Of a DNA stretch of 64,000 nucleotides, positions 1 through 60,182 are shown piece after piece. The translations under genes were made by a program, and so were the position numbers. Below the pieces are notes generated by a model. It saw nothing but the letters and a program-made list of their open reading frames with translations. It searched no databases and was not told where the DNA came from. The stretch comes from Trichosphaerium sp. ATCC 40318 (taxonomy: Eukaryota > Protista > Tubulinea), in NCBI GenBank assembly GCA_038496445.1, contig JALMLS010000376.1:434001-498000 (forward strand), in the 5' to 3' direction. Numbering within the stretch: the first letter of the stretch is position 1; each line of letters starts with the position of its first letter.

Positions 1-1
1 T

Positions 2-256
2 AACTATGTTAATGGTAAATATGAAGGTGAGGTAAAGTTTTGGCATGAAAATGGCGTGCCTAAAAGTCAAATGAAATATGTGAATTCTAAACTTGAAGGA
101 GAGTACAAGTCATGGTATTCAACTGGAAACCCAAGAATATTTTGCAATTATGTAAAAGGAGAACTAAAGGGAGTTTATAGGGAGTGGAAGCTCAATGGCC
201 AGTTAATCAAGCAGTATAATGCTTCTCAAGTAAACAATACCTGTACAATATCTTGA
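2..256 (+). CDS. MORN-variant (MORN_2/YwqK-like) repeat protein, 3' part (5' truncated by window)
   Basis: Open frame from base 2: NYVNGKYEGEVKFWHENGVPKSQMKYVNSKLEGEYKSWYSTGNPR..., with repeated YxNGxxEGxxxxWxxNG units. Confidence 0.85.
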   Translation, partial: NYVNGKYEGEVKFWHENGVPKSQMKYVNSKLEGEYKSWYSTGNPRIFCNYVKGELKGVYREWKLNGQLIKQYNASQVNNTCTIS

Positions 257-477
257 GAGACATACAACATCACAATAAAAAAACTTTTTATAGACATTTG
301 CATTCTGGTACTTTAAGTGTTCCAATAATCTATGTTCTGTGTCATATTCAATCGTTACTAAAGGTTTACTTATGTTTTGGCCTTTCAGTTACGATGAAAG
401 TGTAGCGATGCACTGCACAAAAACCGTACTATTTACAATCGCAAACAAAGCTATAAATTGAAGAACTAAATATCACT

Positions 478-2505
478 CTATAAAACTACTTTATTGTGTC
501 TACGATTGGTCTCTGTTTGTACTTGTGACTGGCGTGCATTGACAAAAACAGCATACCATGTCCAAACCATCATTGAACTCAATGCAATAATGAGTGTAGC
601 AGTAATATACGTGACAACAGAACCAGCAAAACCACCACCGAATCCTTGAAAACACCTGTACATATCATAACATACAATCAAACATGTAAAAACAGTCGCT
701 AAAAAAAATAGGTTTAGTGTCGCTTGAAATCACGTGGGCTTTAAAAAAAATACATGAGACGTACATGTAAAAAGTACATTGTATGTACTATCTCTTATCT
801 TATTCTTGGATGCTTCTGACTGAGCAATGTAGAACAAAAGCATGAACAGACCATAAAACATATACGATATTGTAGGGATTGTTTGCGCTATCGCTTTGAA
901 CTCCTCATACCTATTTTCTCTTAGTTAACAGCTTTGATTAATACACAAACAAAAGCCTAATCGCGTACAATTCAAGGGAGCCACCTCCAAAGACGTTCAT
1001 ACGATAAGCAATGACAATAAGGAACGTGCCAAGACATCCGTAAAGAAAGTACTTTTTTATGTCACCCATGTTCTTAGTAACATGCAGTATTGACCATATA
1101 GCAGTTCCAGCGTATATTATATGTCCAATTTGATCAGCTGAGATTGATCCTTGTCTAACAATGTCGGGGTTGTGATGAAGAGAAACCCTAAAGTCGTAAT
1201 CTGACATATACGATAAAATATCAACAACCATCCAGTCCAGTATTGCTATTGTAAAAGTAGATATAGAAGCTACCATCAATGCTATCTCTTGTCTTGATTG
1301 AGTTTGTTTGCTGATGAATGAGCTCTGCGTTGCTAAAACCACCAGGGTTGCTGCAATCAGGCAGGAAGTAAGTCTGAAAACAACCCAACTTAGTCCCCAT
1401 AGAAAGCCACTTTTCTCATTCTCTAGCCATAAGCTGGCGTACAAAATAATAGTAAAAAATACCACAAACAAAGCATAAACGTTCGTTATTAGCGTTAGCA
1501 TAGCGTTATCAATCAAAGGACTTGGTTTACGTTCCCTACATTAAAGCAAAGAAATAAGAAAAAAATAGGATTTAAACAGTGACAAAAAAAATCAACAAAC
1601 TTCATTACCTCGATACGCCCTGAGGTTTCCATAATATCCTAGACTTCCAAATAAACCATGATAATTGACCAGCAACTACAGTATGTTGACCAAGCATAAA
1701 TCCAGTTGACATCTTGCCATCGCCATCAAAAGCCTCAACACCAAAAAAGCATAGAGGAATGAACATCAGAAAGGCATTTGAGGCTAACAAGAAACTTTCA
1801 AACCATAATCCGCCGACAAAAGGTTCCCATGAAGTTTGTAAAGGTAGCAGATTGATTAAAACAAAGGGTAATATACAAGAGAAGAAGAAATAAACCATTC
1901 CTCCCAAGTAAGCAAAAAAATTATAAAATATCAAGAAACACAAGTCTACGAACATTACTACTATTGATCCTTCTCCAAATACATTAGATATAAATAACCT
2001 ACCACCTGCTAGACTTGCTTGTGTTAAATTAATAAAAGTGCCAATCTGAATAAGCGCGAAAATGCCGATAGACCACTTAATCGTATTATCTAAAATATAA
2101 CAAATTACATGCTCCCATGGAGGCCTTTGAGGTTTCCAATACTTTGGCTGCCATATATTAGGTTCACCTGACGCTATAAACAAGTTAAAGTCAAGATACG
2201 TTCACCTCAAGGCACATTCTGTTCGGTTTTTTTTTGTTTTTTTTTTGGGTACCTTTTCGTTGTTTGTCTGTTTTGAAGCGTCCTTTCTTTTCCTTCCAGT
2301 CAACCTTATCTTGTAATAACTTTTCGTAATTTTCTTTAGATAACTTTGTAAGCGCCAAAGTAAGTTTTTTAACAAGACCAGACAAGATAGCGTTCCCTCC
2401 ATAGTAAATAACAGCAAAAATGGGTATACTCCATAGTTGGATGTACAAACCACTCCAAAAGCGATCTATAAGCGCTTGAAGCTCTTCTGGTGTAAAAGAT
2501 GACAT
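478..2505 (-). CDS. Multi-exon multi-pass membrane protein, unknown function
   Basis: Consecutive minus-strand ORFs (2191-2505, 1605-2183, 938-1516, 478-681) rich in hydrophobic helices and separated by short GT-AG introns; no recognised family motif. Confidence 0.6.
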
Positions 2506-3594
2506 TTTGAAGCGATGTTGCTTGTACTGTTTCGCTTTACGAGGTATGAAATTTCAAAGTTTTTCAATTTCGCAATGAACTTTGTGTTGCCACGTAAATC
2601 TGTGTTTGTAGTCAACCAACCGTATTTTAGGTAAGCCCTAGTACACTAATACGACGTTTTGAAATTGTGTTTGTCAATACTTGACACGTGCGCAAAAGGA
2701 AAAAAGGAAAGTTTGGTTTCAGTTCCGAACTAAAACGTCGCGGAGAACGAAATTCAGAGATAATATGGTCGCAATGGTAATATCGATGACGTTTTGCCAA
2801 CGTGGCAAAATGCTACAAAATGTGAACTTCGTAATCCTGTAATAACCCGTGGAGAAATTGATAAAGAACAGTATTGATGCCGCCTAGTGATCCTTTAGCG
2901 ACCTAGCTTTGTATATAGTGGAGTGAAACAGCATAAGACTCATGCTCCATAACGGAACTACTTGTCTGTTTCGAAATACGGATATACCTTACCGGACGCT
3001 ATAGATATCTTACAAAGGCTCAGATACCACTCATAGGCCGGTTATTTGTAGGTTTAGTTATTGCATAAAGCGGAAATCGGAAGATAATTAAATTCTCCTA
3101 AAAAACATACGATTTCATAGTGCAATTACAGCGTACTTCTCTTTATAAACCTCCGAATATGGGCTTCAATTTGAATGAACTAAAGTTTCTTAGTGGTATC
3201 AAACCCAATAAGGAATATTCTACGTAGTACCCGGAACCTAGTGTAGTAAATAAGTGTACTCTGTAAAAGGGTATCTAGAACTTTTAATAACTGAGCACCA
3301 AACGTTTTTTTACCTTTACTTACTAAATACGTCATGCGAGGAGAAACTCTCTACAAATGAAGACAATGGAGAAATATTTACTCCATCTACCCCTCACGTG
3401 ATATGTTTTTACTGTAAGAGGCAATGTAGAATTAGGGAAATTAACAGTAAGTTTAACAGTGGTGCTGAGAAAAAAAGAATCGTATAAACTTAGTACGATT
3501 TTGAAGCGTCACTTAAGTATCGTTTCTTAAATAGACCTTTTTTATACCATTCAAACCAGTCTCTCACAAGCGTTACAACAACCTTACAATCCTC

Positions 3595-15099: not shown

Positions 15100-15350
15100 T
15101 TATTTTTGTTGTGTGAGTGCGAACGAGTTCTCGTCATCACTATCTACAACAGTAGTATCATTTAATGAACCAGAGTTGTTTTTTAGTGGTGGAAGTGTCT
15201 CTAATTTAGATGGAGAGTCCCCCTAGAAAAAGATATGTTAGAACAAAGTTGGCATTGTTATGATTACATAGTACTTTTTTTTTTAAAACGTACGGACCTT
15301 GTTGCCTTCTTCTGTATCCAAGAATTTCTCTCCAAGTGAAGACATGATCT
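15100..15350 (-). CDS. Displaced 3' end of RdRP copy A (rest of penultimate exon plus last exon)
   Basis: Reads (IM)SSLGEKFLDTEEGNK, intron 15297-15223, then GDSPSKLETLPPLKNNSGSL...DSDDENSFALTQQK*. This is colinear with the copy B end MSLFRSKLELATRNNT|DFPRKLETSPPLRRSSGSF...SSDENDSFSLSQP, with the same intron position and phase. Confidence 0.85.
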
Positions 15351-18300
15351 GCTAAATTTGTAAATGTCGAATACTTGACCAAAAATGTCAAGTTTTTGGA
15401 GATGGGTGTACTGAGCGCCATTAGTACCTCTTGTAATAAAAATTTATTTTTAATGTACGTACAGGTATACAAGTAGTCCTAAACCGAGGTAAAAAATACA
15501 AATTGAAAGTCTTTAACAAATTTTATTTAACAACAAAGGAAAAGTATTTTATTTGACATTTTTTTTTTGGGCTACTCTGTGTAGTTCTTACGTGTTGTTC
15601 TCTTTTTTGAGGCCACCTGTAAGCGTTTATTGTATTGGCTGACTGTTTTGAGCTCTAAACTTGGAATTTTAGCCCCAACTTTTTGCCGTTTCACAACTTG
15701 TGTCTGTTGTTCCATCCGACGCTTTTTTACACGTATTGTGGTTTTCTTTGCTTTGCCCTTTTTTGGTTGCTTTTTTTCAGTAGCCTTGCTTTTTTTTTCT
15801 GCTGCTTTTTTTTTTCTTTGCCTTAGCCTATGTAGGATTTAGTATTAAATATGGATTGAGCATTCATACTATCTTTCGATCTATGATTTTATGAGCAACA
15901 GCAATAATTTTAGCTGAGTTTATTTTTCCTACAAAAAAGCTTAACGTTGTTTACATATTTACTTACTTCTTAGCAATGACACCCAATTGGACACCCTTTT
16001 GGCGCTTTGTAGCACTTTTGAGTGTTCCCACACCTCCAACACCTTTCAGTAAGCGTTTGGCATTGTCTGCAGAGGTTTCACAGTACGCTACTAAAGCATC
16101 AACTACTCTATTTGATGTTCCCTTTTTAGCTCTAGCTAACTTCAATGCATCTTGAACAACACGATTGTTTCCTTCACTGGTGTTGTTAGTACGATGTGAG
16201 TTAGCTTCGACATCATTCATATATGTATATGGCGCCCAAGTACAAGGTGGCCACCTAAATAAAACAACATTAGAACAAATAAATTGATTATCAATATGGA
16301 CCATTTGTTTTGTGGTGCAGGAGTTATATAATGCTTCTTTAAGTAGTTCAAATGGGTTTTAACGTTTTTTCCAAGGTACGTACCATCCTATACACGCTTA
16401 GTCAATGTTCAAAAACGTACTGGTACCTCATAGCACTCTGCCCATGTTTCTTCAAATTCTTCTTTGGTGGTTGCACTGAATAATTTATCAGCAACACGCT
16501 CACACCATGCATACTCCCCTTCATTGGCCTCCCCACCCATACCATGCTTCAAGCGCTTTTTTCGGAATGCATCTGCTACATGAAAGCGACAGTGGTGCAT
16601 TTTAAAATCCTCTGGCCATACTTCTTTAGCTGCTAAAATTCAACATCAGAAAAAAAAATGTGAAAAAGAGAAAAAACAATACCTTTTCGAATGTTGAGCT
16701 CACAATCAGCCATAATACGCTCAAAAAAGAACCCATATGTGTCTCGAAGGTGCCTAAACGCGAAAATATATTCTTGTAAAGTTTTACCCTCTGTAAGCGC
16801 CCATCCAAGGTTCATACCCATTGTACTTGTTTCTGACTCTGCCCTGATCCAGTAGAGCATGGCCTGACAAAATAAGTGAACAGAGGGAAGTAAATAACGG
16901 ACAAAATGCTTACATGTGCGCCTGTGTCCGATACTTTGTGTATGGAATCCATGTATAGTGTTTTGGTGTTGGCTTGTTTGAACAGCGAACCAACTTCCAA
17001 ATTTATATAAGAAAAAACAACATGCTCAGCAATAAGTATTTGGATAGTTTTGGGGTATTTAAGATGAATGTGGGTAAACAACTGTGCCTTGTAAGGAATA
17101 AATAATTAAGCTTGAGTACCTCTGGATGTAATCTGTCCATATTATGCGCTTTACGCACTTGTGACGCCATAGCATAGCCACCAGGTACTTCTGAAGTGTT
17201 TACATTATTTTTTGTGGGATCTTTTAAAAAAGATTGCAGCTGAGTGATTGTTAGTGTTATGTACTGCACATACTATGCTCACAATAGTAGTTGTTCGGAT
17301 ACCCAGTTCAATATCTTTTTGTATTTTCTTTCCTGCCGCATAACTTAATTTTAACTTGAACTCTGGGGTGGGTTGACACGCTTCATTGTGTTCTAAAAAG
17401 AAATAAGGTGGTTTTTTCATTTGAATGAGTTTATGCACCTGTAGTTTGCGACAGTTTGATCATTTTACCATCTCTAAGGTTTTCCTGATGCAATATTACG
17501 CGGGCTTTACATATCTTACGGTTAGGGCATTTAAAGTAATGAGCCCACACTGAATTCTTCTTGATGAGTGCTCCATTGTTGTCCGTATGCCATTGGTAGG
17601 CAAAATCTTTCTTTGTATTGGTGTAAAGTACCAAACGGTCACCATGGATCCACACTCCAAGTGTTTTGAACATTTCAGGCGTTACATCAGCCGCAACATT
17701 GTATTCTGGAGGAGTACCTTCCTCCATTATGTGTTTTAATGAGAGCAACAAATGGTTTTTAAGTTTTTGCTCCTATTTTAGCAAGTACTTAATGTTAATA
17801 CCTCATACCGTTGTTGATACGTTTAATAGGTCTGGTGAAAGCGCTGATAGAGTCTTAGCACGTTTCCTTTTTAAGACTCCTTGTAATTATATCAACAATC
17901 TTGTTTGACTGTCAAAAAAATATTCAAAGTCTCTATTGGACATATCTACGCGTGGAAAATGCTATCCTTGTGGTTTGAAGTGGTTTCATTCTTCATGTTT
18001 CTTTGAAGCTTCAACCTTTTTAAAACAGCGGCAAACAACTAATAATGGTTTAAAATGACCTGTTAATGTGCAAAAGAGAGGTTAGGTAACAGCATCAGGT
18101 CTTTACATCGACATTTTACCAACTATTGTAAAATATGTATATTTAGCTTTTCTACGCGTCTGTGACGCCTATGTATCTATTTTGAGGGTGTTTGACACTT
18201 CATTGTTCTTTGAAGCCCCAAACCTCTTCAAAATTACTGGTTCTCTTCAGATTGTTGTTTATTTAACGTGTAAATGCACTGTATTATGTATAACTGAGTC

Positions 18301-18490
18301 ACTGTTAACAAGATACGTTATTTCAGAAAACAGGTCTTATTTTCGGAAGAAGTGGGCCAATCACGTGATATTATTCACAGTCACATGGTCTGACTAGTCA
18401 ATAAACCAAAAACAACACTACAGTCTACAGCAAAACAATTCACCAAAACTCGACATTTTTTGTCAAATATTCGACATTTAACATTCAAAC
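15351..18490 (-). mobile_element. Mutator-like (MULE) DNA transposon, 3,140 bp
   Basis: TIRs at 15351-15396 and 18445-18490 (33/36 identical over TIR positions 11-46), flanked by an exact 8-bp direct repeat CATGATCT (15343-15350 and 18491-18498); contains a MULE transposase gene. Confidence 0.9.
15572..17780 (-). CDS. MULE-family DDE transposase (intron-rich; both ends uncertain)
   Basis: Zn-finger-like YFKCPNRKICKARV...EHN, then LYMDSIHKV (D), IMADCELNIRK (D), HCRFH (CxxH), TWAP, RTNNTSEGNNR (E). A Lys-rich segment follows whose splicing onto the core is unresolved. Confidence 0.85.
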
Positions 18491-21400
18491 CATGATCTTC
18501 ATACATTGTTGAAACCTCTCATATTCTTTTGTTGTCATTTGTACATTAACCATACCATTATCAAGTTTTTGAACATGAGGACAAGACCTCGATTGAGAAG
18601 CAGATAGTTTTGCAAATGGGTCTTGTTCAAGTTTTTGCTTTTTCTGTTCCTTCCCATCTTGCTCTTCTGATTTCCTTTTCTTGCCTGTTGCATTTTTTGA
18701 AGAAGGAGGAGTTATGGCTTTATCAACACGTTCTCTGACAACCTTGATGAGATCTGGTATTGTCTTTTGTTTGACTTCAACAAGCTCTGAATGAAATATC
18801 TGCCATAGTGCTTCAAGTATTGATATACCATGTGACACAGTACTATGCTTATTTATATTTTTGTGTACATGATGATAAGCCACTAATGCAGCTTGCAGAT
18901 AATCAATGTCAGGTTGTACTCTTTTAATATCTTGTCTCATTTTTTTTCTGCTCTCATCTAAGAGTTGCTTCTTCCTTACTTCTATGATATTCATTTTCTC
19001 ACCTTCATGTACTACGGAATTACGTAGTATGTCTTTGTAACCACCTGAACTCTTGATTGTATTTATAGCGTACATAAAGTTTTTGAGGTTAGCATGAAGT
19101 ATGTTGTCCCATAATCTATTCTTTGGATCAGCTAATGCCATGTCAAACGGGTTTTCTCCACTTGAAGTATCAGGATTATCAATGATTTTATTATATTCAT
19201 CTATGGCCTTTATTGTATCATCATGTAACTCGCCAAGGACCTATTAATAGACACCACAGTTAGAGAAAAAAACCCCAAACGATTGTTTGGTTTGGTGTAC
19301 ACTTGTTGACTTGTAAAAGTTCTTTGTATCTGGTTTTGCCAAGTAATGGGGTACCACTACACGCTCGGAAGGTATTGGTATTGATACACCATGTTTAAAA
19401 GATGATATGGATTGCCTAACGTTTGATAAGTAACAAGAAAAATCAAGGTTGTAGCTTACGATGCCAAATTCCCATAATGTTCTGCTTTTTTCAACTCTCC
19501 TTTATCAAGAGCCGCTATTATTTGTGTTATTTATTGTTTGAATTTGAAATTAAATCATGTTTGCATACAAAGAGCGTAGTTTGTTAAGATGCCTGTCGTT
19601 GAATTGTACATGAGAAAATACTAAGAAAAAAAAAAATGAGATCAAGTTTCTATTAAATAAAAAGCGATCGTTTTTACCTCGCACATGAGTCTGTATTTAT
19701 CTTTTGATAAGTTTTCTCGTTCAATCTCCGAGTTACGTAGCATCTCTTCCCCTGTATAGTCTACCTTATATGAAGAAGAATAGTGAAATGTCTTAGGAAC
19801 TGATATTGTAAAAGTGTTAGTGTATTTTATTGCAATGTATTGTGTTCGTACTGTCACGCAAAGGAACTTGTTCAAAAGATGAGATGATCTGAGGATCCCA
19901 ACACACAAAGTACCTGTCACCATCCAAATCACCTTTCTCCATGTCTATTTGTATTGATATTGTTAGTATTACTGAACATGAGATTATACCATATAAGTGG
20001 CGTACAGTAAAAGAGTGGTACTCCATCTGTTGTTTGTTGAGAGAAAATCACAACATTCTTGAGATGACACATTTCTTTTGGACGACGAACTGTAAAGTAT
20101 CGAAGTGAAAATGCTTGATACAAAGGTTGTCTGGACACCAATACTTTGGTACCTTCCTGATTGATTGTTTAGATTCTTTTCAGGTTGTAAGAGAGTTGTT
20201 GTTGGTACCGGTATATTTCTTGAAGTATTGATACAGATCTCATCTTCTTTTAAAACATTGTACTCATCGATACATCCATACAAAGAGCAACAGTATGAGT
20301 TCTAAAAGTTTACATGTTAATGGTAATGAAATGAAGTTCATCTTGTTACCTTTAACTTTGTTTTTTTGGTGAGTTGATCAAGTTCTTTCTTGACACTCGT
20401 TCTCAAGAAATTCTTGATGATTGGTTCATTGATGTCGATACCTTGAAAGTTTAACCACATCATATCTCTCAGCCGTGGATTATGTTTTGACCGCGTGAGA
20501 TATTCTAAATCATTGGTATTAGTGTTTGACTCATAAACACCTGAAATCGTATTCGTACCTTGTGCATCCTCAGAACTTTTTAATACTCGACTGAGCCTAT
20601 CGAACCTCTCTTGTTGCATTTTTCGAAACACTTCACCACCTGTTTCACAGCTTTAGTGATCGCGTGTATGTCGAGTCATCGTACTAACTCCTCTCTGAGT
20701 ACAAAGAAGTATGAACACTCGAGATAATGTAGATGAAGAGTAGTCGGCATATCCAAGAATTGTGATGAAATTAGTATTGAGAGATACTTTAATCATTTCT
20801 CTACGAAATGCTATTGATTCTCCTTCAAGATCCACGTTTGTCACGAGAATACCTTTGCATCCTCGATACCGGATCTATAACATGCGTCAGCTTGTAAGTA
20901 ACCTAGCAAAGTGCGAGAAAAAGTTTCACGAAGCAAAATATGTGCCTGGAATAAACAAGGTGCTTTGCCATTGTTCTTGGGATCAATCATGAACTCTTTG
21001 ATCAGGTAATTGTTCTCCGATTCAGAGTTGCATGTAAGTTTTTCATAAGTGTTTTTGTCAATCAGATCAAGTTCAAACCAATACCTACACGCCAATTGTA
21101 GCTGTTGAGAAATGGAGTTAATATCAAAGTACAATCAAAAGACGTACAGAGAGTTGACCACAACCATCAGTCAAACAGAATGTATTGCCACTTGAACTTG
21201 TTGCAACAATTTCAGGTATCACCTATTTGATTGAGTTTTAACAAACAGCAACCCACGGATTGAGAGTACGTACTTTGATATCTTTGAAGTTACAAGCTTT
21301 GTGTATGATACTTCCAGATGAGAAACTGAGTGATATCCTTGAAGCTGTTTTGGATGTCTGAGATATTGACCGAAAATTACCAATCCTCTAAACCAATATT

Positions 21401-22747
21401 AACAAAAAGAAAGGTATTGATCATACCCTCAGTACGTCCAATGAATGAAATGGTTTAGATGATTCCCTAGATTCAAAAAAATGTGCTTTTTTTTTCGACT
21501 AACGGGAACAAAATTAGAACTCAACAAAGATATCACGTGATTGTCAATTTTGTCTCGGATACTTGAAATACGCACGTGCAAGTCTTGATTTGCATTTAAA
21601 TATCTGAATAATCCAATTGGCGTTTTATCTTGCTTGGATGCAAACAAAAGAACACCAAATAGAAGACTACGTTGCATGATACGTTCTGCACGTGTTTTTT
21701 CTGCTGTAGTCATAAATCGTTTATCAGTTGTGATGAGTTTATTGAAAGATATTTGAAGAAGTCTATCAAGTGCTTTGTGTTGATTTAAAAACTGAACCAT
21801 TCCACAAGACTTTTTAATCACATCCTAGATTGTGGAACGCAACAATTAGCAAAATGCATCCCATTAAGGAGTTTGTCTTACCTCAACTTCTCCTCTGACA
21901 TATTCCGATTCCTTCTCAGGCAGTGTCAATTGCACATCAGGTAGTTTGACAATATTATCAGAACCAAGTTGTGTCCTTGTAAGCGTTGAAATGAGGTACA
22001 CCTTTTGAGGGCCATTGACGTTGTCCTCTTCGAGATCTTCATAAAACTTCATCACCTCATAAACACGTGTACATGAATGAATATGAGCATCCTTGTACCT
22101 ACTATTATTACATTTCCTACAAAGAAGAAATCAATCCAAAAATCTCGAGTTTTCTTATTGTACCATCTGTACTGATAAAAATAGATGTTCGTCAAATACA
22201 CGTTCCTCTTACCACCCTTAACTAATTTTTTACCATGTTCAACATCCTTTTTACCTTCACGGTTTGGATGAAGCCATAAAATTAAGTTTCTTCTCGTTTC
22301 TTGACCATGTTTTTTTTGAGAAATCCAACCAATAGGTACCATGTTTATTTTGTTGCCACGCTGTTCAATAAGAAAAAATAAAGTTAGAATACGCTGTAAC
22401 TAGTACGTTTATGTACTAGTTTTCATTCAGACACGTACTACACCGTCTACAATAGCCATAAGCTTTTCAAAACTTAAGCAAGGTTCAAACAAAACAGAAA
22501 TGGAGTAAGATGTCTTCTTATGCTTTGGTTCTGGTTCAATATCGCATAGATGCTTAAAATCTGGCGTAGCTGGGCGAAGTTTGCCAATGCCCAAGTCTGA
22601 GCTAGAAGTTAGTCTAGGTCGCTTGCACGGAGACGGGCTCTCGGCCCTAAAACGCGTGTTAAAAACCAGCTGTCAGAGATTTTTTTTATTGTACTCGTCA
22701 TCACTTATGACAATCGCTTCTTCTTCTTGCCTTGGTCGCTTAGACAT
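18491..22747 (-). CDS. Eukaryotic RNA-dependent RNA polymerase (RDR/QDE-1 family), copy A, interrupted near its 3' end by the MULE
   Basis: TDGCGQLS, PCLFQ|IRYRGCKG, LLYGCIDEYNVLKEDEI, HLKNVVIFS, GDLDGDRYFVCWDP, YKSTS|VLGEL. If unspliced, the frame stops inside the TIR (V* at 18485). Confidence 0.9.
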
Positions 22748-24695: not shown

Positions 24696-27600
24696 ATGTC
24701 TAAGCGAACAAGAGAAGAAAAAGAAGCGATCACAAACGGCAGTGAGGGCGGTTCTCAACTATCTACCCTTGAGTAAACGAAAAAATTTGGACAATACGCT
24801 TTTACACTTACATTTTGTAGGGCTTCTCCACCGCGCAAGCGCATTAAACATGCTCACTCGGATATAAAAGTACTCAAGTCGGACTTGACAGACAATCGAG
24901 TTGATGACAGTACCCAAAATGACGTAGAAAATTATAGCAAGCCCAAGTTCAGCATCGGCTCACTCAGACCAGAGTTGCCAAGCTTTATACACATGGTAGA
25001 TATTAAGCACTCACTGAAGCCTAAGCCACCAGTTGTACACTCTGTTGCTGTATTATTTGAACCATGTTTAACCTTTGAGAGACTCAAACGTCTTTTGAAT
25101 GCTTCAGTAAGAAATAGAAAAACATCATTTTTGCTTGCGTTGACACTTTGCGACAGAATAGGAGAATTGTTAAGGAACCAATCGGGTGGATTACACAAGA
25201 TAATATCAGATTCAATTTAATTTTATGGCTTCATCCAAACCGTGAAGGTAAAAAGGATATTGAACATGGTAAAAAATTAGTTAAGGGTGGCAAGAGAAAA
25301 GTGTACTTGGCGAATATCCATTTTAATGCATACAGCCGGTAAGAATACAAATGAGATGTTCAATGCTTACTTCTCTTTATAGAGTGAATAATACAAAGTA
25401 CCAAGATGCTCACATTGATTCAACTACACGCGTTTATGAAGTGATGAAGTTTTATGAAGATCTCGAAGAGGACAACGTCAATGGCCCTCAAAAGGTGTAC
25501 CTCATTTCAACGCTTACAAGGACACAACTTGGTTCTGATAATATTGTCAAAATATCTGATGTGCAATTGACACTGCCCGGCGAAGGGTCTGAATATGTCA
25601 AAGCAGAGGTTGAGGTGAGACTTTCTTTACATGATGTACATTACTGATTGTTACGTACAATACTAGGATGTGATTAAAAAATCTTGTGGAATGGTTCAGT
25701 TTTTATATCAACACAAAGCACTTGATAGACTTCTTCAAATATCTTTCAATAAACTCATCACAACTGATAAACGATTTATGACTACAGCAGAAAAAACACG
25801 TGCAGAACGTATCATGCAACGTAGTCTTCTATTTGGTGTTCTTTTGTTTGCATCCAAGCAAGATAAAACGCCAATTGGATTATTCAGATATTTAAATGCA
25901 AATCAAGACTTACACGTGCGTATGACTTTTTGTTTCAACTACAAAATGTCTAACTTTATTCCTTTCAGTCCAAACAAAAAGCACATTTTTACCAAACTAT
26001 GGATGCCGAACCATTTCATTCATTAAATATATTGAGGGTATGGCATTTTGGTAAGAGTAGCATGTGATTGTTAATTGTTTGCGTGTAGTGGATTGGTAAT
26101 TTTCGGTCAATATCTCAGACATCCAAAACAGCTTCAAGGATATCACTCAGTTTCTCATCTGGAAGTATCATACGCGAAGCTTGTAATTTCAAAAATATCA
26201 AAGTACGTACTCTCAATCCGTGGGTTGCTATTTGTTAAAACTCAATCAAATAGGTGATACCTGAAATTGTTGCAACAAGTTCAAGTGGCAATACATTCTG
26301 TTTGACTGATGGTTGTGGTCAACTCTCTGTACGTCTTTTTGGTTTTCGTGATTGTATTTTGTTATTAACTCCATTTCTCAACAGCTACAATTGGCGTGTA
26401 GGTATTGGTTTGAACTTGACCTGATTGACAGAAACACTTATGAAAAACTTACATGCAACTCTGAGTCGGAAAACAATTACCTGATCAAAGAGTTCATGAT
26501 TGATCCCAAGAACAATGGCAAAGCACCTTGTTTATTCCAGGCACATATTTTGCTTCGTGAAACTTTTTCTCGTACTTTGCTAGGTTACTTACAAGCTGAC
26601 GCATGTTATAGATCCGGTATCGAGGATGCAAAGGTATTCTCGTGACAAATGAAGATTTGGAAGGAGAATCAATAGCATTTCGCAGAGAAATGATCAAAGT
26701 ATCTCTCAATACTAATTTCATCACAATTCTTGGATATGCCGACTACTCTTCATCTACATTATCTCGAGTGTTCATACTTCTTTGTACTCAGAGAGGAGTT
26801 AGTACGATGACTCGACATACACGCGATCACTAAAGCTGTGAAACAGGTGGTGAAGTGTTTCGAAAAATGCAACAAGAGAGGTTCGATAGGCTCAGTCGAG
26901 TATTAAAAAGTTCTGAGGATGCACAAGGTACACTTGTTTATGAATCAACGACTAATGCCAATGATTTAGAATATCTCACGCGGTCAAAACATAATCCACG
27001 GCTGAGAGATATGATGTGGTTGAACTTTCAAGGCATCGACATTGATGAACCGATCATCAAGAATTTCTTGAGAGCGAGTGTCAAGAAAGAACTTGATCAA
27101 CTCACCAAAAAAACAAAGTTAAAGGTATTTACAATGCTGAAAGCACAGTTTCATTGTTAAATCAGAAATTTTAGAACTCATACTGTTGCTCTTTGTATGG
27201 ATGTATCGATGAGTACAATGTTTTAAAAGAAGATGAGATCTGTATCAATACTTCAAGAAATATACCGGTACCAACAACAACTCTCTTACAACCTGAAAAG
27301 AATCTAAACAATCAATCAGGAAGGAACTAAAGTATTGGTGTCCAGACAACCTTTGTATCAAGCATTTTCACTTCGATACTTTACAGTTCGTCGTCCAAAA
27401 GAAATGTGTCATCTCAAGAATGTTGTGATTTTCTCTCAACAAACAACAGATGGAGTACCACTCTTTTACTGTACGCCACTTATATGGTATAATCTCATGT
27501 TCAGTAATACTAACAATATCAATACAAATAGACATGGAGAAAGGTGATTTGGATGGTGACAGGTACTTTGTGTGTTGGGATCCTCAGATCATCTCATCCT

Positions 27601-29286
27601 TTGAACAAGTTCCTTTGCGTAACAGTTAAGAAGCACTGTTGTTACTTTAAACTAACATTTATTGTATCAGTCCCCAAGCAATTCCGTTATTCTGGCAAAT
27701 ATGAATCAAGTGGCAAAGGAGAAGAAATCCTACAGAACGTTAAGTATAACATGGAAAACTTATCAATAGATAAATACAGACTCATGTGCGAGGTAAAAAC
27801 GATCGCTTTTGATTTAATCCAGAAACTTTATCTCATTTTTTATTCTTAGTATTTTCTCATGTACAATTCAACAACAGGCATCTTAACAAACTACGCTCTT
27901 TGTATGCAAACATGATTTAATTTCAAATTCAAACAATAAATAACACAATAATAGCGGCTCTTGATAAAGGAGAGTTAAAAAAAGCAGAACATTATGGGAA
28001 TTTGGCATCGTAAGCTACAACCTTGATTTTTCTTGTTACTTATCAAACGTTAGGCAATCCATATCATCTTTTAAACATGGTGTATCAATACCAATACCTT
28101 CCGAGCGTGTAGTGGTACCCCATTACTTGGCAAAACCAGATACAAAGAACTTTTACAAGTCCACAAGTGTACACTAAACCAAACAATCGTTTGGGGTTTT
28201 TTTTGCCTCTTACGTGTTTATTAAGGTTCTTGGGGAGTTGCACGATGATTCAATGGAGGCTTTAGATAACTTTGAGAGAATCATTAATAATCCCGACACA
28301 TCGGAGAACCCTTGTGAATGCAAACCGAACCAGTTTGACAAGACAATATCGCAGCCTAATAAAACATTATGGGACAACGTAATCTATAAGAACCTCCACG
28401 ACTTTAAGATCGCCATAGATACAATCAAGAGTTCCGGAAGCTACAAAGATATGATTCGTAATAAAACTGTACATCAAGGTGAGAAAGTGAGCATCACTGA
28501 TGTAAGGAAAAAACAAATCTTGGAGGATAGCAGAACAAAAATGAAACGAGATGTCATTGAATTTCACGATAGAACAAAATGTGCAATTGATTATCTTCAA
28601 GTTGCATTAGTGGCTTACCATCATGTACACAAAAATATAGATGAGTACAGCAGTTCACCACATGGTATATCAATACTTGAAGCACTATGGCAGATATTTC
28701 ATTCAGAGCTTGTTGAAGTCAAACAAGAGAATATGCTAGATCTCATCAAGGTTGTCAGAGAACGTGTTGATAAAGCCATAACTCCTTCTTATCGAAAGGT
28801 GACAGGTATCAAAAGGAAATCAAAAGAACTACAAGAAGTACAAGAACAGAAAAAACAAAAAATTGCTTCAAAATCAGGAAAAAAGCAAGAACGAGAAGAT
28901 GTTAATGACGCTTTTGTGTCACAGTTTTCTATATCGCCATCTACTTCTTCTCCTTCGTCAACCAGTATCCAAAGACATGGAGGGATAGTTAACATACAAC
29001 TGTCGATGACAGAAGAAGAATATGAGAAATGCATGTACGGCATGTCTTTATTTAGGAGTAAGTTGGAGTTAGCAACAAGAAACAATACTGTGCGTGTTTT
29101 AGTAGCAGGAGGATCGTTTTGTTGACATTGTTATTTTTCTAGGACTTTCCGAGAAAATTAGAGACAAGCCCTCCACTAAGACGCAGCTCTGGTTCGTTTT
29201 CTAGTTCGCAAGTTGATTATTCTAGTGACGAAAACGACTCGTTTTCACTCTCTCAACCGTACAAGACAATCTATAAAACAATTTAA
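24696..29286 (+). CDS. Eukaryotic RNA-dependent RNA polymerase, copy B (uninterrupted)
   Basis: Inverted paralog of copy A with the same motifs including GDLDGD near 27543-27560; starts MSKRTREE (copy A MSKRPRQE); last exon starts at 29143. Confidence 0.9.
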
Positions 29287-48125: not shown

Positions 48126-51100
48126 ATGAAGCCTAGCAGCCTTTCACTCCTGCTTGTGATTTCGCTTGTATCTTGCGCTCTGGCACAGTTTAGACCGCTC
48201 TCATTACCCCCTGCTCAAAGAGAAGATTTAGCAGTTGCCACATGCAGGGACGTGCCAGAAGGCGGTCCAATCGTCGCTATCGTGGGTACGGATCTTAATT
48301 TTGTTCAGCCCTAAGTTGATAATCACGTGATTATGACCAAGAGCCGTATTTTTGAGTAATACAGGTGTTAACGGCTCAAAGTGCTTATTTGGCGCCTGAG
48401 TATTTTGGGTTTTTTTTTCAAATCACGAACCTTTGATATTGTATTCTCGAGTTGGCTTTTTCTACTTCTTTCGGTTGACGTTATCCACTAGACGCAAGAA
48501 GAATGCAATGCGACGCCCCAATGCCTCCAGGGGACCCTGTACTTATACAAAATTGGAATACTTCCATTTATCATGGAGAGGTAAGCGTCATAAGAGACTT
48601 TCTTCAACACCGATCCTTTGTGCAAACTTCCAAAATAATTTTTTTTTCTATTTTCTCGAAACTTCTAATTTTTCGCCTTAGGACAACGTCTTATGGAATA
48701 GAACAGCATTTGACAATAACTTAGTATTTGGTATTGCCTTAGACGAGGTTTTTAACATCTATGTTACATCCACATCAATCTGGGGGCCAGAGTTTGCCAG
48801 CGGTAATATTTTCCGTATTGATGGGCAAGATGGAAGTGTTTCTGTATTTGCGACTCTACCACAGCTAGGCGGTACAAATTCTGGTTTGGGTAATATTGCC
48901 TACCATCAAACAGCCAAGAATTTTTACGTCACGAACTTCTTTGACGGCGCAATTTATCGCCTAAACGCAACGGGCGGTATTTTAGACACATATCTCCCTT
49001 TTGGTGATGCAAGGAGTACTCCTGGTGCACCATTTGCTGACCAAGATAAACTACTTTGGGCTGTTCAAGTTAACCACGATGAAAATCGTTTGTATTTTGG
49101 TACGTAGATCGAAACGTGATTGTTCACCAAAAAAAAAAAAAAAAGCTCCACCAGGTTTTTTTTTGGTTTTCCTTTTTTCTTGTTTTGATTCTTATGTCAC
49201 ACCATAGGTACCAGGTTTGAAGATGGTAGTATTAGAGCTGATGGTGTTGGTCCTAATGCTAATCGCGTATATTCTATATCTCTAGAAACGTAAGAAAGAA
49301 CTTTATTTGATTGAAATCCTATATCATCTCTTTCTAATCTTGGTTTGTAGAGACGGTAGCTTTACAAATAACAGCATGAACTCTACATTGGTAGAAGAAC
49401 TTATTCTAGAAGAATTTGACCAAGCTCTTTGTGAAAGCGCTTTGAGTTGTGCAGATTCTCGTACGTTCAAACTAACTGCAAAAATATGTTTTTTTAGATT
49501 TAATTTACTTTCTAGCTATTGGTAACTGTGATTGTGATTTCACTATGCCTATATCTGATATCGCGTTTTCCGCCAACTTTAATACTATGCTTATATCAGG
49601 CACGTGATTAAACACGTGATTTGAGTGTAATTATTAACTTTTTTTTCGTTTACAGAAAAATCTATGAACGATGTTTTCTCCACTGTGGCTCACTTGGGAA
49701 GAGTAATACAGTACGCTGGAGCAAGTGGTAACTGGTCAGAAACAACGGCACAATTCGAGGCAGGATATTTTGATAATGAACGTCGCTCGAACGCTGGTGG
49801 TGGTGTAGATTACTTAGAATGTCTCAGTACGTTTAAAAACCTGAAAGAAAGAAAATAGTTTCATTCTTGTAACTTACTTTTTACGACAGGTGAAACAGAG
49901 TGTGCCGTGAACACAAGTGTGGCAGTATTCACAGCTGACGCGATTCTCGTCAGCCCAGGAGAAAACCTATACGGTCTTCAATTCACCAGAGCTGATACTG
50001 GCGGTGGTGTAGGAGATTCTTATGCACTTGACCTAGATGGTGACATAGGCGATACTTTTGATAAACGAAATCTTGGTGATGTAGAAGTTATGCGTGGTTG
50101 CATAGTATCAGGTACAAAAAGACATGCCATTATGTTTCCCTCTATTTACATCCGTAGCTTCTGGTCCAGGTGCTCCAGCAGCTCCAGTGCCTCCAGTAGC
50201 TCCAGTGGCAACTCCACCTCCTACAACTGCTGCACCTACAGCACCTCCAACTGAGGCTCCCCCAACAGCACCTCCAACTCAGGCTCCTCCAACAGCTCCA
50301 CCTACGAACGCTCCTTTTGCTCCATTTTCTCCTACAGAGGCTCCATCTAACGCTCCTGTGCCTGTCCCTACAGAAGCTCCATCGAATGCTCCTTTCCCAC
50401 CACCTACGGATCCACCTACAAACGCTCCTGTTCCTGAGCCGCCAACGAATGCCCCGGTTCCCCCAACAGATGCGCCTACTGATGCACCAACAGATGCTCC
50501 GGTAGCTCCTACAGACGCTCCAACAGATGCTCCTGTAGCTCCAACAGATGCTCCTGCAGCTCCAACGGCCGTTACTGTAGCTCCTACAGACGCTCCTGTA
50601 GCTCCTACTGGTTCAAACGACAGTACACCAACTGGAGTGCCTGTGGGACCCACTGTTTCTATTGGTAACATCATCTTTAACGATATTAACGGTGATGGTG
50701 ACCAAAGTAAGAACACATGAACATAAAAAACCCAATCGTATTTGAGGTTTATCCTTCTCTATGGCGAACTAACTTTGTTCTTTAGCCGGTGACGATAATA
50801 TTCCTCTTGTTGCTACAATCGTTCTATTAGACGCAACCGGTACTATGGCTCTTGGAGGAACTACGACAAACAATGAAGGATTCTACGAACTTGATGATCT
50901 TGAGCCTCTCACGGACTACATCATTTGTGTTGATTTCACAATTTCTATGCCACTTATGGGCGTACTAAGTCCAGCATTTGCAACAAATGATACTGCTACT
51001 GATTCTAATGGTCAACTCGCAAGATACAATGTTTTTGGATTTGTGGGCAGAGTACGACTTTCTTATGAATGATCACGTGTTTTTTTTTTTCGAAATGGAA

Positions 51101-54100
51101 TTTCTTTTTTTTTGGTTCATTTGTAACTATTTATTAGGATATGTCTTGTGCGAATGTTACTTCTCCTGCTACGGGTATAGATGATACAGTCGATTTTGGA
51201 TTCGCTATGATACCTCCTATTGCCCCTTCTGCACCTCCAACTGCAGCACCGACTGATGCACCAACAGAAGCTCCAACAATGGCTGCTAACGTTGAGATTG
51301 GAGATCTTGTTTTCAATGACGTTCTTGCTGATGGTATTCAAGGTAACAACCAACTTCGTCTTGTTTCTTGTTTGACTCATTACTTAGGTGCTGATGAAGT
51401 ATTTAACTCTACATTCCGTGTAATTCTATTGAATGCAAATGGATCAACAATCATGGCTGAAACGGAAACAGATGCCAGTGGTATTTACGGATTCAACTCA
51501 ACAGATGGATTGATACCTGAAACGGACTACATTGTTTGTGTTGATTACCTTGCATCTGAACCAACAGCATCCATCAGTTCTTCATTTGTTGGTAATGATA
51601 CTTCCCTTGATTCAAATGGACAAGAGGCATTCTATCCTATTGTCGCTAATACGGTGCGTTAAAACAATTGGTTTGTTTCTATCACCTGCCTTACTTTTCA
51701 ATAGAGTCTTTCATGTGCCAATGTGACCACACCAATGGCAGGACTCAGTGACTTTACTTACGATTTCGGATTCACCATTGCTCCTCCAACTGAAGCTCCA
51801 ACTGACGCTCCAACAGATGCTCCTGTAGCTCCAACAGCTGTTACTGTAGCTCCAACAATGGCTGGCAACGACACTACAACTGAACCACCAACCATGGCTG
51901 GCAACGGCACTACAACTGACGCACCAACGATGGCACCAAATGGTACTACTGATACACCAACTATGGAACCTTTAGGGCCAACTATGCCAGCTACTGTTTC
52001 TATTGGTAATTTGATTTTTAACGATATCAACGGTGATGGTGACCAAGGTACAATATTGTCATGTGGTGTAACACATACTCACATGGAATCTAGCTGGAGA
52101 CTTGCCTGTCGATAATTTAGCCGTCAATATTGTTGTGCTAAACGGAGATGGTACTCAACGTGTAGCCTCAGTCAGTAATACTGGCTTGACTGGCACATAC
52201 CAAGTTGATAATCTGATTCCTAACACACCATACATTGTATGTGTTGACTACCTTGTCGCTGATCCTCTCATGGGCGACTTGAGTCCAGCTTTTGCAACAA
52301 ATGATACTGCTACTGATTCCAATGGTCAAATCGCATTTTATCCAGCTCATAGTGCAAGCAGAGTACGATGACACTTTTTATGGTTAGAAACTTACTGTTT
52401 GTTTCATAAATAGAATCTATCATGTGCCAATGTGACCTCTCCTGCAAATGGCACAGATGACACCATTGATTTTGGTTTCACCATGCTTCCAGGTGCTCCA
52501 ACAGAAGCACCAACTGATGTGCCAACAATGGCAGGTAATACAACAGAACCACCAACGATGCCAGCAAATACAACCGAGCCGCCAACGATGCCAGCGAATA
52601 CAACAGAACCACCAACGATGCCAGCAAATACAACCGAACCGCCAACGATGCCAGCGAATACAACAGAGCCACCAACCATGCCAGCGAATACAACAGAACC
52701 ACCAACGATGCCAGCAAATACAACCGAGCCGCCTACTATGCCAGCAAATACAACAGAACCACCAACGATGCCAGCAAATACAACAGAGCCGCCAACGATA
52801 CCGGCCAATACAACAGAATCACCAACCATGGCGCCATCAAACGCCACATCACCACCTACTCTATCTCCAGCTAATGTGGGTATTGGTGACTTCATTTTTA
52901 ACGATGTTAATCAAAACGGAATGCAAGGCATGTATATCACGCCTACTCTTCTCTCCTCTTATATTTTATTTAGATGGTGATACAGCGTTCATTGTTAATT
53001 TCCCTGTTGCACTTTTGGATGCAAACGGAACTCAAGTTCTCGCTGAAACCATGTCTGGTATGGATGGTATTTACGGATTCAACTCACTTGATGGATTGAT
53101 GCCACAAACGGACTACATTATTTGTGTTGACTATCAATCTGTTTTGGGATCTTCAGCAGGAATCAGTCCTGCTTTTGAAGGGCAATCATTCCTTGATTCT
53201 CATGGTGAAGCCGCTATTTACCTAGCTTTTAGCAACGAGGTACGTTTTTTGCTTATTCTGTAAAAGTTCTATTGTTATGTTTTGCTTATTTTTATGATAG
53301 ACTGTATCTTGTGCAAATGTCACAACACCAATAGCTGGTTTTACTGATAACACCATCGATTTCGGTTTCTTCGAACCCGGAACACCTGCACCAACATTTG
53401 CTCCTAGTACCTCAGGAAATAATGGAACCATGTCACCAACTGCAGGTCCTGTTGCAAACGTAAGTATTGGTGACTTTGTGTTTATGGACGCTGGAATGGA
53501 TGGTCTTCAAGGTACATATTTCACTTCCAATATCAGCCGTATTAACGATCCCTCTTCTCCCATTAATAGGCCCTGACATTGCTTTTGGCGATTTGATTCC
53601 AACCATACTATTGGACGCTACAGGAACCATAATAATTGCTGAAAATAGTACTGATAGTCTGGGCATATACGAATTCAACCAAGACCATGGTGTATTACCA
53701 GAAACTGATTACATTGTCTGTGTTGACTACCAGGCTGTATTGACTAGCGTTGATATCTCTGAAGCTTTCGTCAATAACGACACCGCACTAGACTCGAATG
53801 GTCAAGCTGCGATATATGATGTTTACAGCAACACCGTAAGATAACCTTTAATGTAGTGTTACAAACTAATTCTTTTTTCCAAAAGACACAACTTTCTTGT
53901 GCAAATGTAACATCCCCAATGGCAGACGGTGTTGATGATACAATCGATTTTGGATTTTTTATTGTTCATACACCTGTGGCGAATGGCACCGATGCTCCAA
54001 CAATGGCAGCCAACGCAACTACAACCGAACCACCAACAGTACCAGGTAATACAACAGAGCCACCTACGATGGCACCCAACGTAACTACAACCGAACCACC

Positions 54101-57100
54101 AACAATACCAGCCAATACAACAGAACCACCAACGATGCCAGCCAATACGACAGAACCTCCAACGATGCCATTCAATACAACAGAACCTCCAACAATACCA
54201 GCCAATACAACAGAACCACCAACGATGCCAGCAAATACAACAGAACCGCCAACGATACCATCGAATACAACAGAGCCACCTACGATGGCACCCAACGTAA
54301 CTACAACCGAACCACCAACAGTACCAGCCAATACAACAGAACCACCAACTATGGCTCCAGTATCAAACGTGACATCACCACCTACTCTGTCTCCAGCTAA
54401 TGTGGGTATTGGTGACTTCATTTTTAACGATGTGAATCAAAACGGAATACAAGGTATGTATTACTAACACTTTTGCCAACACCTTACACTTTTATTTAGA
54501 TGGCGAGCCAGCGTTCATTGTTAATTTCCCTATTGTACTTTTGGATGCAAGTGGAACCCAAGTTCTCGCTGACACTATGTCTGGCATGGACGGTATTTAC
54601 GGATTCAACTCACCTGATGGATTGATGCCACAAACGGACTACATTATTTGTGTTGACTATCTATCTGTTTTGGGATCTTCAGCAGAAATCAGTCCTTCAT
54701 TTGCAGGCGGACAAGCATTCAGTGATTCCCATGGCGAAGCCGCTATTTACCCAGCCTACAGTAACGAGGTATTTTATTTATTTTTTTCTGTTTTTTTTCT
54801 TATCACAACCACGTGTCTGGTTGTTTATAAATAATGCCTTACAAAGTTGTTGTGCTTATTTTTTTATGATAGACTTTATCTTGTGCAAATGTCACAACGT
54901 TAATGGCTGGCTTTACTGATAACACCATCGATTTCGGTTTCTTCGAACCCGGAACACCTGCACCAACATTTGCTCCTAGTACCTCAGGAAATAATGGAAC
55001 TGTGTCACCAGCAGCTCCTATTGCAAACGTAAGTATTGGTGATTTCATCTTTAATGATGTAGGAGAAGACGGGGAACAAGGTACTTTTTTTCTTATTTTT
55101 TTCTGTTTGTACACGTTAATTCTATTATTAACCCATTACCTTTAGGTACCGATGTTGCATTCGCAGAAGATTTCATCGTCGTGCTTTTGGATGAATCCGG
55201 TACAACAATAGTTGCTGAGACAAACGTAACTGCTGGATTCTACGGATTCGATGGAACAGATGGATTACTAGCAAACACTTCATACATTGTATGTGTTGAT
55301 TTCCAAGCTGTTACAGGACTTGATCTAAACATGTCGCCTGCGTTTATCGGAAATGATTCTTCTACGGACTCCAATGGAGAAGCAGCTACATACACTGTCT
55401 ACAGTGACCAGGTAGAGTTTTAAACAAAAGTTATAAGCCCATGTATCAAGTGTGTTAACTGGCTGCTTAGATGCTTTCATGTGCTAATATCACTACACCT
55501 TTGGAAGGTTTTGCTGATGATACCATCGATTTTGGATTCTTTGTAGCAAATAACGCCACAGAGGCACCAACCGATGCTCCAACAATGGCAGGAAACGCAA
55601 CTACAACCGAACCACCAACAATGGCTGGTAACGACACTACAACCGAACCACCAACTATGGCTGGTAACGCAACTACAACTGAACCACCAACCATGGCTGG
55701 CAACGGTACTGACGCACCAACGATGGCACCAAATGGTACTACTGATGCGCCAACTATGGAGCCTGTAGGACCAACTATGCCAGCACCTACTGTTTCTATT
55801 GGTAATTTGATTTTTAACGATGTCAACGGTGATGGTGACCAAGGTGCGTCCCGACTTTTAGATTTCATGTTTGTTCTTTATTTCTCATTTATTTTAATAG
55901 CTGGAGACTTCGCTGTTCCAAATTTGGCTGCCTCAGTTGTTGTGCTAAATGGAGACGGTTCTGCACTAGTAACTATTGTGTCAACAGGCGGCCTCTCCGG
56001 AGAGTACCAAGTTGATAATCTGATTCCTAACACACCATACATTGTATGTGTTGACTACCTTGTCGCTGATCCTCTCATGGGCGACTTGAGTCCAGCATTT
56101 GCAACAAATGATACTGCTACTGATTCCAATGGTCAAATCGCATTTTATCCAGTTTACAGCACAAGCAGAGTACGATGATACATTAACTTTTATTCAATAA
56201 CTTACTGTTTGTTTCATCAATAGAATCTATCATGTGCCAATGTGACCTCTCCTGCAAATGGAACAGATGACACCATTGATTTTGGTTTCACTATGCTTCC
56301 AAGTGCTCCAACAGAAGCACCAACCGATGTACCAACAGAAGCGCCAACAGATGCCCCAACAATGGCTGCTAACGTTGAGATTGGAGATCTTGTTTTCAAT
56401 GACGTTCTTGCTGATGGTATTCAAGGTAACAACCAACTTCATCTTGTTTCTTGTTTGACTTATTACTTAGGTGCTGGTGAAGTATTTAACTCAACATTCC
56501 GTGTAATTCTATTGAATGCAAACGGATCAACAATCATGGCTGAAACGGAAACAGATGCAAATGGTATCTACGGATTCAACTCAACAGATGGATTGATACC
56601 TGAAACGGACTACATTGTTTGTGTTGATTACCTTGCATCTGAACCAACAGCTTCCATCAGTTCTTCATTTGTCGGTAATGAAACCTCCCTCGATTCAAAT
56701 GGACAAGAGGCATTCTATCCTATTGTCGCTAATACGGTATGTTAACATTGTTTCATTATGTATCACCTACCGTCTATTTACATTTGTATTTTCAATAGAG
56801 TCTTTCATGTGCCAATGTGACCACACCAATGGCAGGACTCAGTGACTTTACTTACGATTTCGGATTCACCATTGCTGAAGTGCCAACTGAAGCTCCAACT
56901 GACGCTCCAACAATGGCAGGCAACGTAACTACAACTGAACCACCAACAATGGCTGGCAACGACACTACGACCGAACCACCAACTATGGCTTCAAACGCCA
57001 CCGAAGCTCCAACAATGGCTGCTGGAAGTGTAGCACTTGGAGATCGTGTGTTCAACGACTTAAATGGTGATGGTATTCAAGGTATGTTATACATCCTAAA

Positions 57101-60100: not shown

Positions 60101-60182
60101 TGGTCCGGCTGCTGCCTACGCGGAATGGCATGCTAAACTTTCTTGCGGATGTAAATGTATTCAATGCGCTTGCGAGAGTTAA
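48126..60182 (+). CDS. Giant secreted mucin-like protein: beta-propeller-like N-terminus, 13 SdrD B-like domains separated by Pro/Thr linkers, Cys-rich C-terminus
   Basis: Signal peptide MKPSSLSLLLVISLVSCALA; repeats of SIGDxVFNDxNGDGxQ...GxYxF...YIVCVD...DSNG...TIDFGF starting near 50654, 51290, 51995, 52875, 53460, 54400, 55030, 55792, 56373, 57030, 57668, 58333 and 59101; ends ...LSCGCKCIQCACES*. Confidence 0.85.
52537..52830 (+). repeat. Coding 30-bp tandem minisatellite (PANTTEPPTM, about 9-10 copies)
   Basis: ccagcaaatacaacagaaccaccaacgatg repeated directly; related arrays near 53995-54350, 55560-55760 and 58870-59080. Confidence 0.95.

Follow-up and report, generated by a model that had tools for sequence, protein, structure and literature searches.

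Maize mop1-1 is, by analogy, the closest precedent for the locus described here, and the same configuration has in this sense already been published. In this allele, a Mu1.7 element with a 9-bp target site duplication (TSD) is located in exon 4 of ZmRDR2, approximately 220 bp beyond the pfam05183 domain (Woodhouse, Freeling & Lisch 2006, PMC1563492). Reverse transcription PCR revealed that the mop1-1 transcript continues into the unspliced element, and the mutant loses the small RNAs of MuDR (PMC1563492). In addition, autonomous terminal inverted repeat (TIR) elements that generate introns have been described (PMC12130899). We analyzed a stretch of 64,000 nt from the protist Trichosphaerium sp. 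ATCC 40318 (contig C6:434001-498000, hereafter the window), in which a Mutator-like TIR DNA transposon lies within RdRP-A, one of two neighboring genes for cellular RNA-dependent RNA polymerases (RdRPs). The searches of the organism's own genome covered its 70-Mb assembly of 642 contigs. The GC content of 35-42% and the open reading frames (ORFs) split by short GT-AG introns indicated that the window is eukaryotic, and bacterial gene structure was not seen.

The element has the same orientation as RdRP-A and interrupts the last large coding exon of this gene, with the following features at the insertion site.

15351..18490, minus strand: autonomous, Mutator-like TIR DNA transposon of 3,140 bp, with inverted ends, TSD and other genomic copies
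18491..18498, minus strand: upstream copy of the TSD, AGATCATG (minus strand), encoding the ...(K)IM end of the interrupted exon
15343..15350, minus strand: downstream copy of the TSD, AGATCATG, an exact 8-bp match to the upstream copy
18428..18490, minus strand: 5' TIR, with the element start GTTTGA and a core with TTGAC at positions 25-29
15351..15413, minus strand: 3' TIR, with the element end ...AAATTTAG/C
15298..15342, minus strand: displaced rest of the interrupted RdRP-A exon (15 residues), SSLGEKFLDTEEGNK, followed by the donor GTCCGT
15100..15222, minus strand: displaced last exon of RdRP-A, 40 codons plus TAA, with the conserved acidic motif SDDENSFALTQ, aligning with RdRP-B at 29143-29235

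On the minus strand, the junctions read ...CAACAATGTATGA-AGATCATG/GTTTGAATGTTAAATGTCG...CGACATTTACAAATTTAGC/AGATCATG-TCTTCACTTGG, where the slashes mark the borders of the element. An earlier note on this DNA had claimed that a DNA transposon resides inside an RdRP gene, and the exact 8-bp TSD, the inverted ends and the presence of multiple element copies bore this out. The inverted ends were also picked up independently by a repeat finder (53 nt, 79%); their alignment showed a near-perfect core at positions 11-46, with only approximately 50% of the outer 10 nt matched. As judged by eye, removal of the element together with one TSD copy rebuilds the reading frame, in agreement with the same note, and the rebuilt frame matches both the exon and the intron position of the paralogue RdRP-B. 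The last exon of RdRP-A reads GDSPSKLET...ALTQQK-stop (GDSPSKLETLPPLKNNSGSLNDTTVVDSDDENSFALTQQK-stop), RdRP-B reads, with the slash at its intron, CMYGMSLFRSKLELATRNNT/DFPRKLET... (CMYGMSLFRSKLELATRNNT/DFPRKLETSPPL...SSDENDSFSLSQ...), and the intron of RdRP-B is found at the same distance as in the rebuilt RdRP-A, 20 codons past the shared CM.

The exon upstream of the element ends in ...EYERFQQCMKIM, and the unspliced frame runs on as CMKIM-V-stop, which places a stop two codons into the element. The unspliced product would thus be RdRP-A minus its last 55 residues, plus one extra Val. The loss of 55 C-terminal residues, the retention of GDLDGD and the common orientation of transposase and RdRP-A had all been proposed in the earlier note, and each agreed with our reading: 15 and 40 residues are displaced, the motif is located at 19933-19916, and both genes are on the minus strand.

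DNA searches of the genome revealed at least four further full-length copies of the element, on contigs C323, C574, C183 and C575, each covering query positions 1-3140 exactly; partial copies were also found at contig ends. Each of these full-length copies possesses its own perfect 8-bp TSD (ATTTTTTG, CAAATTTC, AACATTAT and AAATTAAT), so that the duplication is 8 bp long in five of five full-length copies, and different perfect TSDs around identical element ends are far above chance. The identity between copies is 99.2-99.8%, corresponding to 5-24 substitutions per 3,140 nt, with 5 separating the window copy from that on C323. TIRs, a TSD and five full-length copies with identical ends in different flanks characterize the element as a class II TIR DNA transposon. 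Because the full-length copies have their own TSDs and differ from one another by so few substitutions, the family is a real, young, low-copy cut-and-paste transposon with about 5-6 copies of 3.1 kb, and it is apparently still active. Since this identity compares with a divergence of 13% between RdRP-A and RdRP-B, the insertion is much younger than the duplication of the two genes.

Among the sites of the five full-length insertions, a long ORF is interrupted in one (RdRP-A), and two are in non-coding DNA. The copy on C575 was inserted, in sense orientation, immediately after a coiled-coil-like ORF of at least 79 codons, whose TAA stop is included in the TSD AAATTAAT; the copy on C574 adjoins an antisense ORF of 95 codons and may be located at the 5' splice site of this ORF. 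Element copies with identical flanks were observed twice, as an inverted pair on C575 (357-3494 and 12263-13238) and as C57:1-972 versus C574, and they probably reflect haplotigs or a redundant assembly where contigs end in repeats. In addition, the 5' subterminal region of the element contains a tandem duplication of approximately 206 bp, with two copies about 73% identical, at window positions 17930-18240 on the minus strand (element positions ~250-560). Both copies contain ACGCGTAGA, in which ACGCGT is similar to a cell-cycle (MluI-box) promoter motif, and the duplication could represent the promoter of the transposase or a set of binding sites.

The interrupted gene and its neighbor were delimited as follows.

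18491..22747, minus strand: RdRP-A, putative start to insertion point (PF05183; exon model approximate)
19916..19933, minus strand: GDLDGD catalytic motif of RdRP-A, intact, read from the sequence
~24696..29286, plus strand: RdRP-B, uninterrupted head-to-head paralogue (PF05183; aligned with RdRP-A)
27543-27560, plus strand: GDLDGD motif of RdRP-B, read from the sequence

RdRP-A is a cellular RNA-dependent RNA polymerase (RDR, PF05183). Protein and profile searches of the RdRP genes and the transposase were run exon by exon; at this level, the GDLDGD exon of RdRP-A scored 26.6-26.9 bits against PF05183 (cut-off 23.8), and a six-frame search gave 75.3 bits for RdRP-A (profile positions 190-370) and 78.4 bits for RdRP-B. 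A gene finder relying on codon usage only produced poor models, while a version aided by conservation performed better but missed the GDLDGD exon, and its models were used solely for approximate exon parallels and for the ratio of non-synonymous to synonymous change (dN/dS). The two genes are 87% identical at the DNA level across 3.7 kb, introns included. This identity is a mosaic, in which tracts of 97-100% in exons and introns alternate with patches of 55-80%, and both ends are diverged; the mosaic region corresponds to window positions 18628-22288 for RdRP-A (minus strand) and 25214-28865 for RdRP-B (plus strand). There are 31 exact runs of at least 21 nt, with a total of 2,324 nt, and the longest of these (270 nt) spans GDLDGD. 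Such mosaic identity is characteristic of recurrent gene conversion between paralogues in inverted orientation. Indels between the two genes with a length not divisible by three were all located between ORF segments, in the inferred introns, and the dN/dS between the two genes was approximately 0.43, an approximate per-exon Nei-Gojobori value obtained from an imperfect exon model with exons unjoined and split codons dropped.

The Pfam match in RdRP-A ends at 19868 (position 452 of the 582 in the profile), and from there 1.38 kb remain to the insertion farther downstream. The element is thus well past the catalytic domain and in a tail that within this genome is found only in RdRP-A and RdRP-B; the only genomic relative of the 250-residue exon preceding the element is copy B. 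The RdRP genes are expanded in the genome, with at least six loci (two on C29, one on C81, one on C93 and the two on C6 described here), and the genome also has a Piwi/Argonaute (Piwi-domain) locus. The two genes on C29 form a convergent pair approximately 17 kb apart (285656-288004, plus strand; 305644-308858, minus strand).

The coding content of the element was read by eye, so that the internal exon boundaries of the transposase are approximate.

15576..17727, minus strand: transposase coding region, ~9 exons with short introns, start at 17727
17439..17727, minus strand: transposase exon 1, predicted N-terminal WRKY-like zinc-finger DNA-binding domain (sub-threshold Pfam WRKY match and Foldseek search of an AlphaFold model)
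16684..16863, minus strand: transposase exon with the putative second catalytic Asp, ...ERIMADCELNIRK, read from the sequence, with 76% conservation at the protein level in the relative on C194
15966..16253, minus strand: transposase exon with the RTNNTSEGNN motif and the putative catalytic Glu, the motif being invariant in six family members (alignment A1)

Exon 1 shows the pattern Y-x-W-H...HYFKCxNRxxCxARV, and the later exons contain, in order, LYMDSIHK, ERIMADCELNIRK-AAKEVWPEDFKMHHCRFH and RTNNTSEGNN. Judged by eye only, this gives the motif order D...D-x22-CxxH...TNNxSExNN. We take the order D / D-x22-CxxH / TNNxSExNN to be the signature of the Mutator superfamily; a link between WRKY domains and MULEs, as well as the D/D/CxxH/E signature, has reportedly been described before. 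Protein searches revealed at least 30 related loci in the genome. In a relative on C194 that is 69% identical, the transposase exons show 58-76% protein identity and the subterminal 3' repeat is kept, and recognizable element termini were not found in this relative.

The Pfam WRKY profile matched below its cut-off, with E = 0.027 in the element and E = 0.013 in the relative L032. An AlphaFold (AF2) model of exon 1 was built from a 7-sequence family alignment, with a mean predicted local distance difference test score of 67, and a Foldseek search of PDB with this model returned WRKY domains as 7 of the top 11 matches, at E-values of approximately 0.2 or weaker. The best match was 6j4e_B, with a probability of 0.99, a TM score of 0.65 by target, a root mean square deviation of 2.0 A and E = 0.2. 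Together, the sub-threshold profile matches and the modeled fold lean towards an N-terminal zinc finger of the WRKY/GCM1 type. TTGAC is the W-box core, the target of WRKY domains. This pentamer occurs in the TIR core at element positions 25-29 from either end (window 18462-18466 and 15375-15379), and a second, inverted copy is present at the right end (TTGAC-N7-GTCAA, element positions 3100-3104). Three occurrences were counted in the terminal 120 nt, compared with 0.33 expected, and these terminal copies would fit a WRKY-like DNA-binding domain in the transposase.

The profiles PF10551 (MULE) and PF00872 (Transposase_mut) gave no match in a six-frame search of the genome or in exon and ORF scans of the element and its relatives L008, L032, L038 and L039, probably because the 99-position MULE domain is split over three exons and the exons were searched singly. 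In a protein atlas, the clusters nearest to the E-motif exon carry MULE, SWIM and FAR1 domains (score 0.84), which we regard as a lead only. A profile of the E-motif exon (alignment A1) recovered no true relative among 1.84 billion representative proteins, and a word search with the 288-aa ORF of the relative L038 gave no match. The two matches that the profile did return, an ankyrin protein and a low-complexity protein, are both repeat proteins and were rejected as spurious. On the basis of the motif order and the predicted WRKY-like fold, we call the element Mutator-like; it was not filed as a typical MULE because its TSD is 8 bp rather than the classical 9-11 bp.

Taken together, the directly read evidence comprises the insertion with its exact borders and its youth, the premature stop, the displacement of 55 residues, the intact GDLDGD motif, the paralogue RdRP-B and at least four other RdRP loci. 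The locus is probably best explained by a recent insertional mutation, caused by an autonomous Mutator-like TIR transposon, in RdRP-A, one of two head-to-head and partly gene-converted paralogues. The product of such an allele would be RdRP-A with a truncated C-terminus or, alternatively, a chimeric transcript that is unstable, and the allele may accordingly be hypomorphic or null. For the truncated protein, a poly(A) signal in the 5' part of the element, for example the AATAAA 228 nt into it, at 18263, could terminate the mRNA. If transcription ran on, the chimeric RNA would carry many downstream introns behind a premature stop and would be a likely substrate for decay. Redundant paralogues may explain why the allele is tolerated, and the population may be polymorphic or heterozygous for it. 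If the silencing of the element is affected at all, this would then be a by-product, as in maize mop1-1, rather than an evolved circuit.

Several points weigh against this explanation. The exon model obtained by dynamic programming is imperfect and missed the GDLDGD exon, and the central identity between RdRP-A and RdRP-B reflects gene conversion, so that intactness in this region says little about selection on RdRP-A. In addition, the displaced tail holds a motif conserved between the two genes (KLET.PPL...SGS...DEN.SF.L.Q), and its loss may therefore not be neutral. Moreover, the element has invariant GT...AG ends placed for in-frame removal, and the protein might not be truncated.

This last point leads to the reading, unlikely on the present evidence, that the element is removed as an intron. 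Its GT start and ...TTTAG/C end would act as splice sites, and a sense insertion in an exon would leave the C and the 8-bp TSD, a 9-nt footprint that never shifts the frame; in the present case, RdRP-A would gain Gln-Ile-Met and otherwise keep its full length, with a predicted spliced junction of ...ATCATG/CAGATCATGTCT. The junction ATG/GTTTGA...AAATTTAG/CAGATCATG TCT indeed offers a phase-0 donor, after which reading would resume with CAG ATC ATG TCT, and the termini are identical in all five full-length copies. The poorly matched outer 10 nt of the TIRs include a mismatch at position 2 that gives GT at the left end where the right end predicts GC, and autonomous TIR elements generating introns have been reported (PMC12130899). 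However, GTTTGA is weak compared with the local donors, which are mostly GTA or GTG, with T at +3 in only 2 of approximately 30 inferred donors, and the inferred introns measure 41-148 nt, versus 3,139 nt for the element. The element itself contains eight introns on the same strand with competing sites, and a GT and an AG at two given positions easily arise by chance. Introners are expected as introns in many coding genes; with one of five full-length copies interrupting a long ORF, the family shows no sign of exon specialization. The extended form of this reading supposes an autonomous intron-generating Mutator-like transposon, whose GT...AG/C termini and TSD would guarantee the in-frame footprint; the insertion in RdRP-A would be a freshly born 3.1-kb intron, and the RdRP-A pre-mRNA would continuously present transposon RNA to the silencing machinery. 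We consider this a long shot.

Two further readings concern the condition of the locus itself. It is improbable that RdRP-A, as a duplicate, had already begun to decay and that the element landed, with neutral effect, in a pseudogene. RdRP-A is a duplicate with a nearly identical neighbor, and its central identity is kept by gene conversion rather than by selection on RdRP-A itself; however, its diverged parts contain no stop or frameshift and show more synonymous than non-synonymous change per site. In particular, its last large exon (19240-18491) is only 60% identical to that of RdRP-B yet remains open over 250 codons, and the catalytic motif has been preserved. Nothing in the sequence points to RdRP-A having been a pseudogene before the insertion. 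An assembly artefact, in which a repeat copy was misassembled into the RdRP locus, is extremely unlikely. The element is a multi-copy repeat, and some of its copies border contig ends or belong to contigs that are duplicated (C574 is matched by C57, and C575 has the element twice). On the other side, the TSD is perfect, and the flanks rebuild an ORF that is collinear with RdRP-B down to the intron position. A search for an empty site found both flanks once only in the 70-Mb assembly, and this single occurrence of each flank also argues against a wrong join. The 26-mer of the empty site and the element terminus were absent from a set of metagenome contigs, a collection without this organism and hence uninformative. 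Finally, the earlier note had proposed a regulated host-parasite loop, in which read-through RNA from RdRP-A would include sequence of the transposon, so that silencing directed at the element could extend to the RdRP, or the RdRP promoter could drive the transposase. We judge such a loop to be very improbable. It is in its favor that, given the same orientation and the stop just inside the element, read-through RNA would be chimeric by construction, that chimeric RNA of such a kind was observed for mop1-1 and that a Piwi-domain gene is present. Secondary small interfering RNAs from RdRP-A would also match RdRP-B over the 2,324 nt in exact runs, and co-silencing, which is possible, would reach RdRP-B because the two genes share these 31 runs. 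The promoter arm did not stand up as well: the transposase ATG (17727) is 763 nt past the premature stop of an ORF of roughly 1,000 codons, with 12 ATGs and the AATAAA at element position 228 in between. Eukaryotic ribosomes scan, and an ORF behind a long ORF and many ATGs is hardly translated. Translation of the transposase from a read-through mRNA would thus be improbable, and this arm is mechanistically unlikely. Furthermore, the loss of RdRP-A would be buffered by at least four other RdRP loci, and such a young insertion would have left no time for selection to shape a circuit.

Elsewhere in the window, positions 48126-60182 contain long Pro/Thr-rich repeats (APTDAPT..., TEPPTMPAN...) alternating with globular modules (...GIYGFNSTDGLIPETDYIVCVDY...), which make up the gene of a large mucin-like surface protein.

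Taken alone, an insertional mutation of RdRP-A would be an ordinary allele with a well-studied precedent in maize. It is of interest because an apparently active transposon has, in nature and only very recently, struck a gene of the very pathway that should keep transposons in check, and has done so in a little-studied protist. The locus also offers a convenient test case for termination, read-through or splicing of a host transcript and for the spread of small RNAs into both RdRP genes. As in mop1-1, a TIR element of the Mutator superfamily (here Mutator-like) interrupts a coding exon of the gene for a cellular RdRP (PF05183), past the RdRP domain and flanked by a TSD, and in mop1-1 the mutated RdRP belongs to the pathway that silences the same transposon family. 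The maize allele, however, arose in a Mu-active laboratory line from the non-autonomous Mu1.7, with a 9-bp TSD and in a conserved region, whereas the protist locus comes from a natural assembly, has an autonomous element with an 8-bp TSD and has a twin gene adjoining it. Here, more than 1.3 kb separate the last Pfam-matched residue from the insertion, which falls in a lineage-specific tail. With Mutator elements and MULEs, the transposon shares TIRs and a TSD, the predicted WRKY-like N-terminal zinc finger and, by eye, the order of motifs; it differs in its TSD, which is 8 bp long in each of the five full-length copies where 9-11 bp is classical, and in that PF10551 and PF00872 were not detected exon-wise. 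The splicing of Ds and Mu in maize provides the classic cases of transposons removed as introns. Like introners, the element brings GT and AG at its ends, and splicing it out of an exon in which it has the sense orientation would leave a footprint that keeps the reading frame; in contrast, introners are typically short, non-autonomous and present in many genes, whereas this family has about 5-6 copies of 3.1 kb, with one in an ORF.

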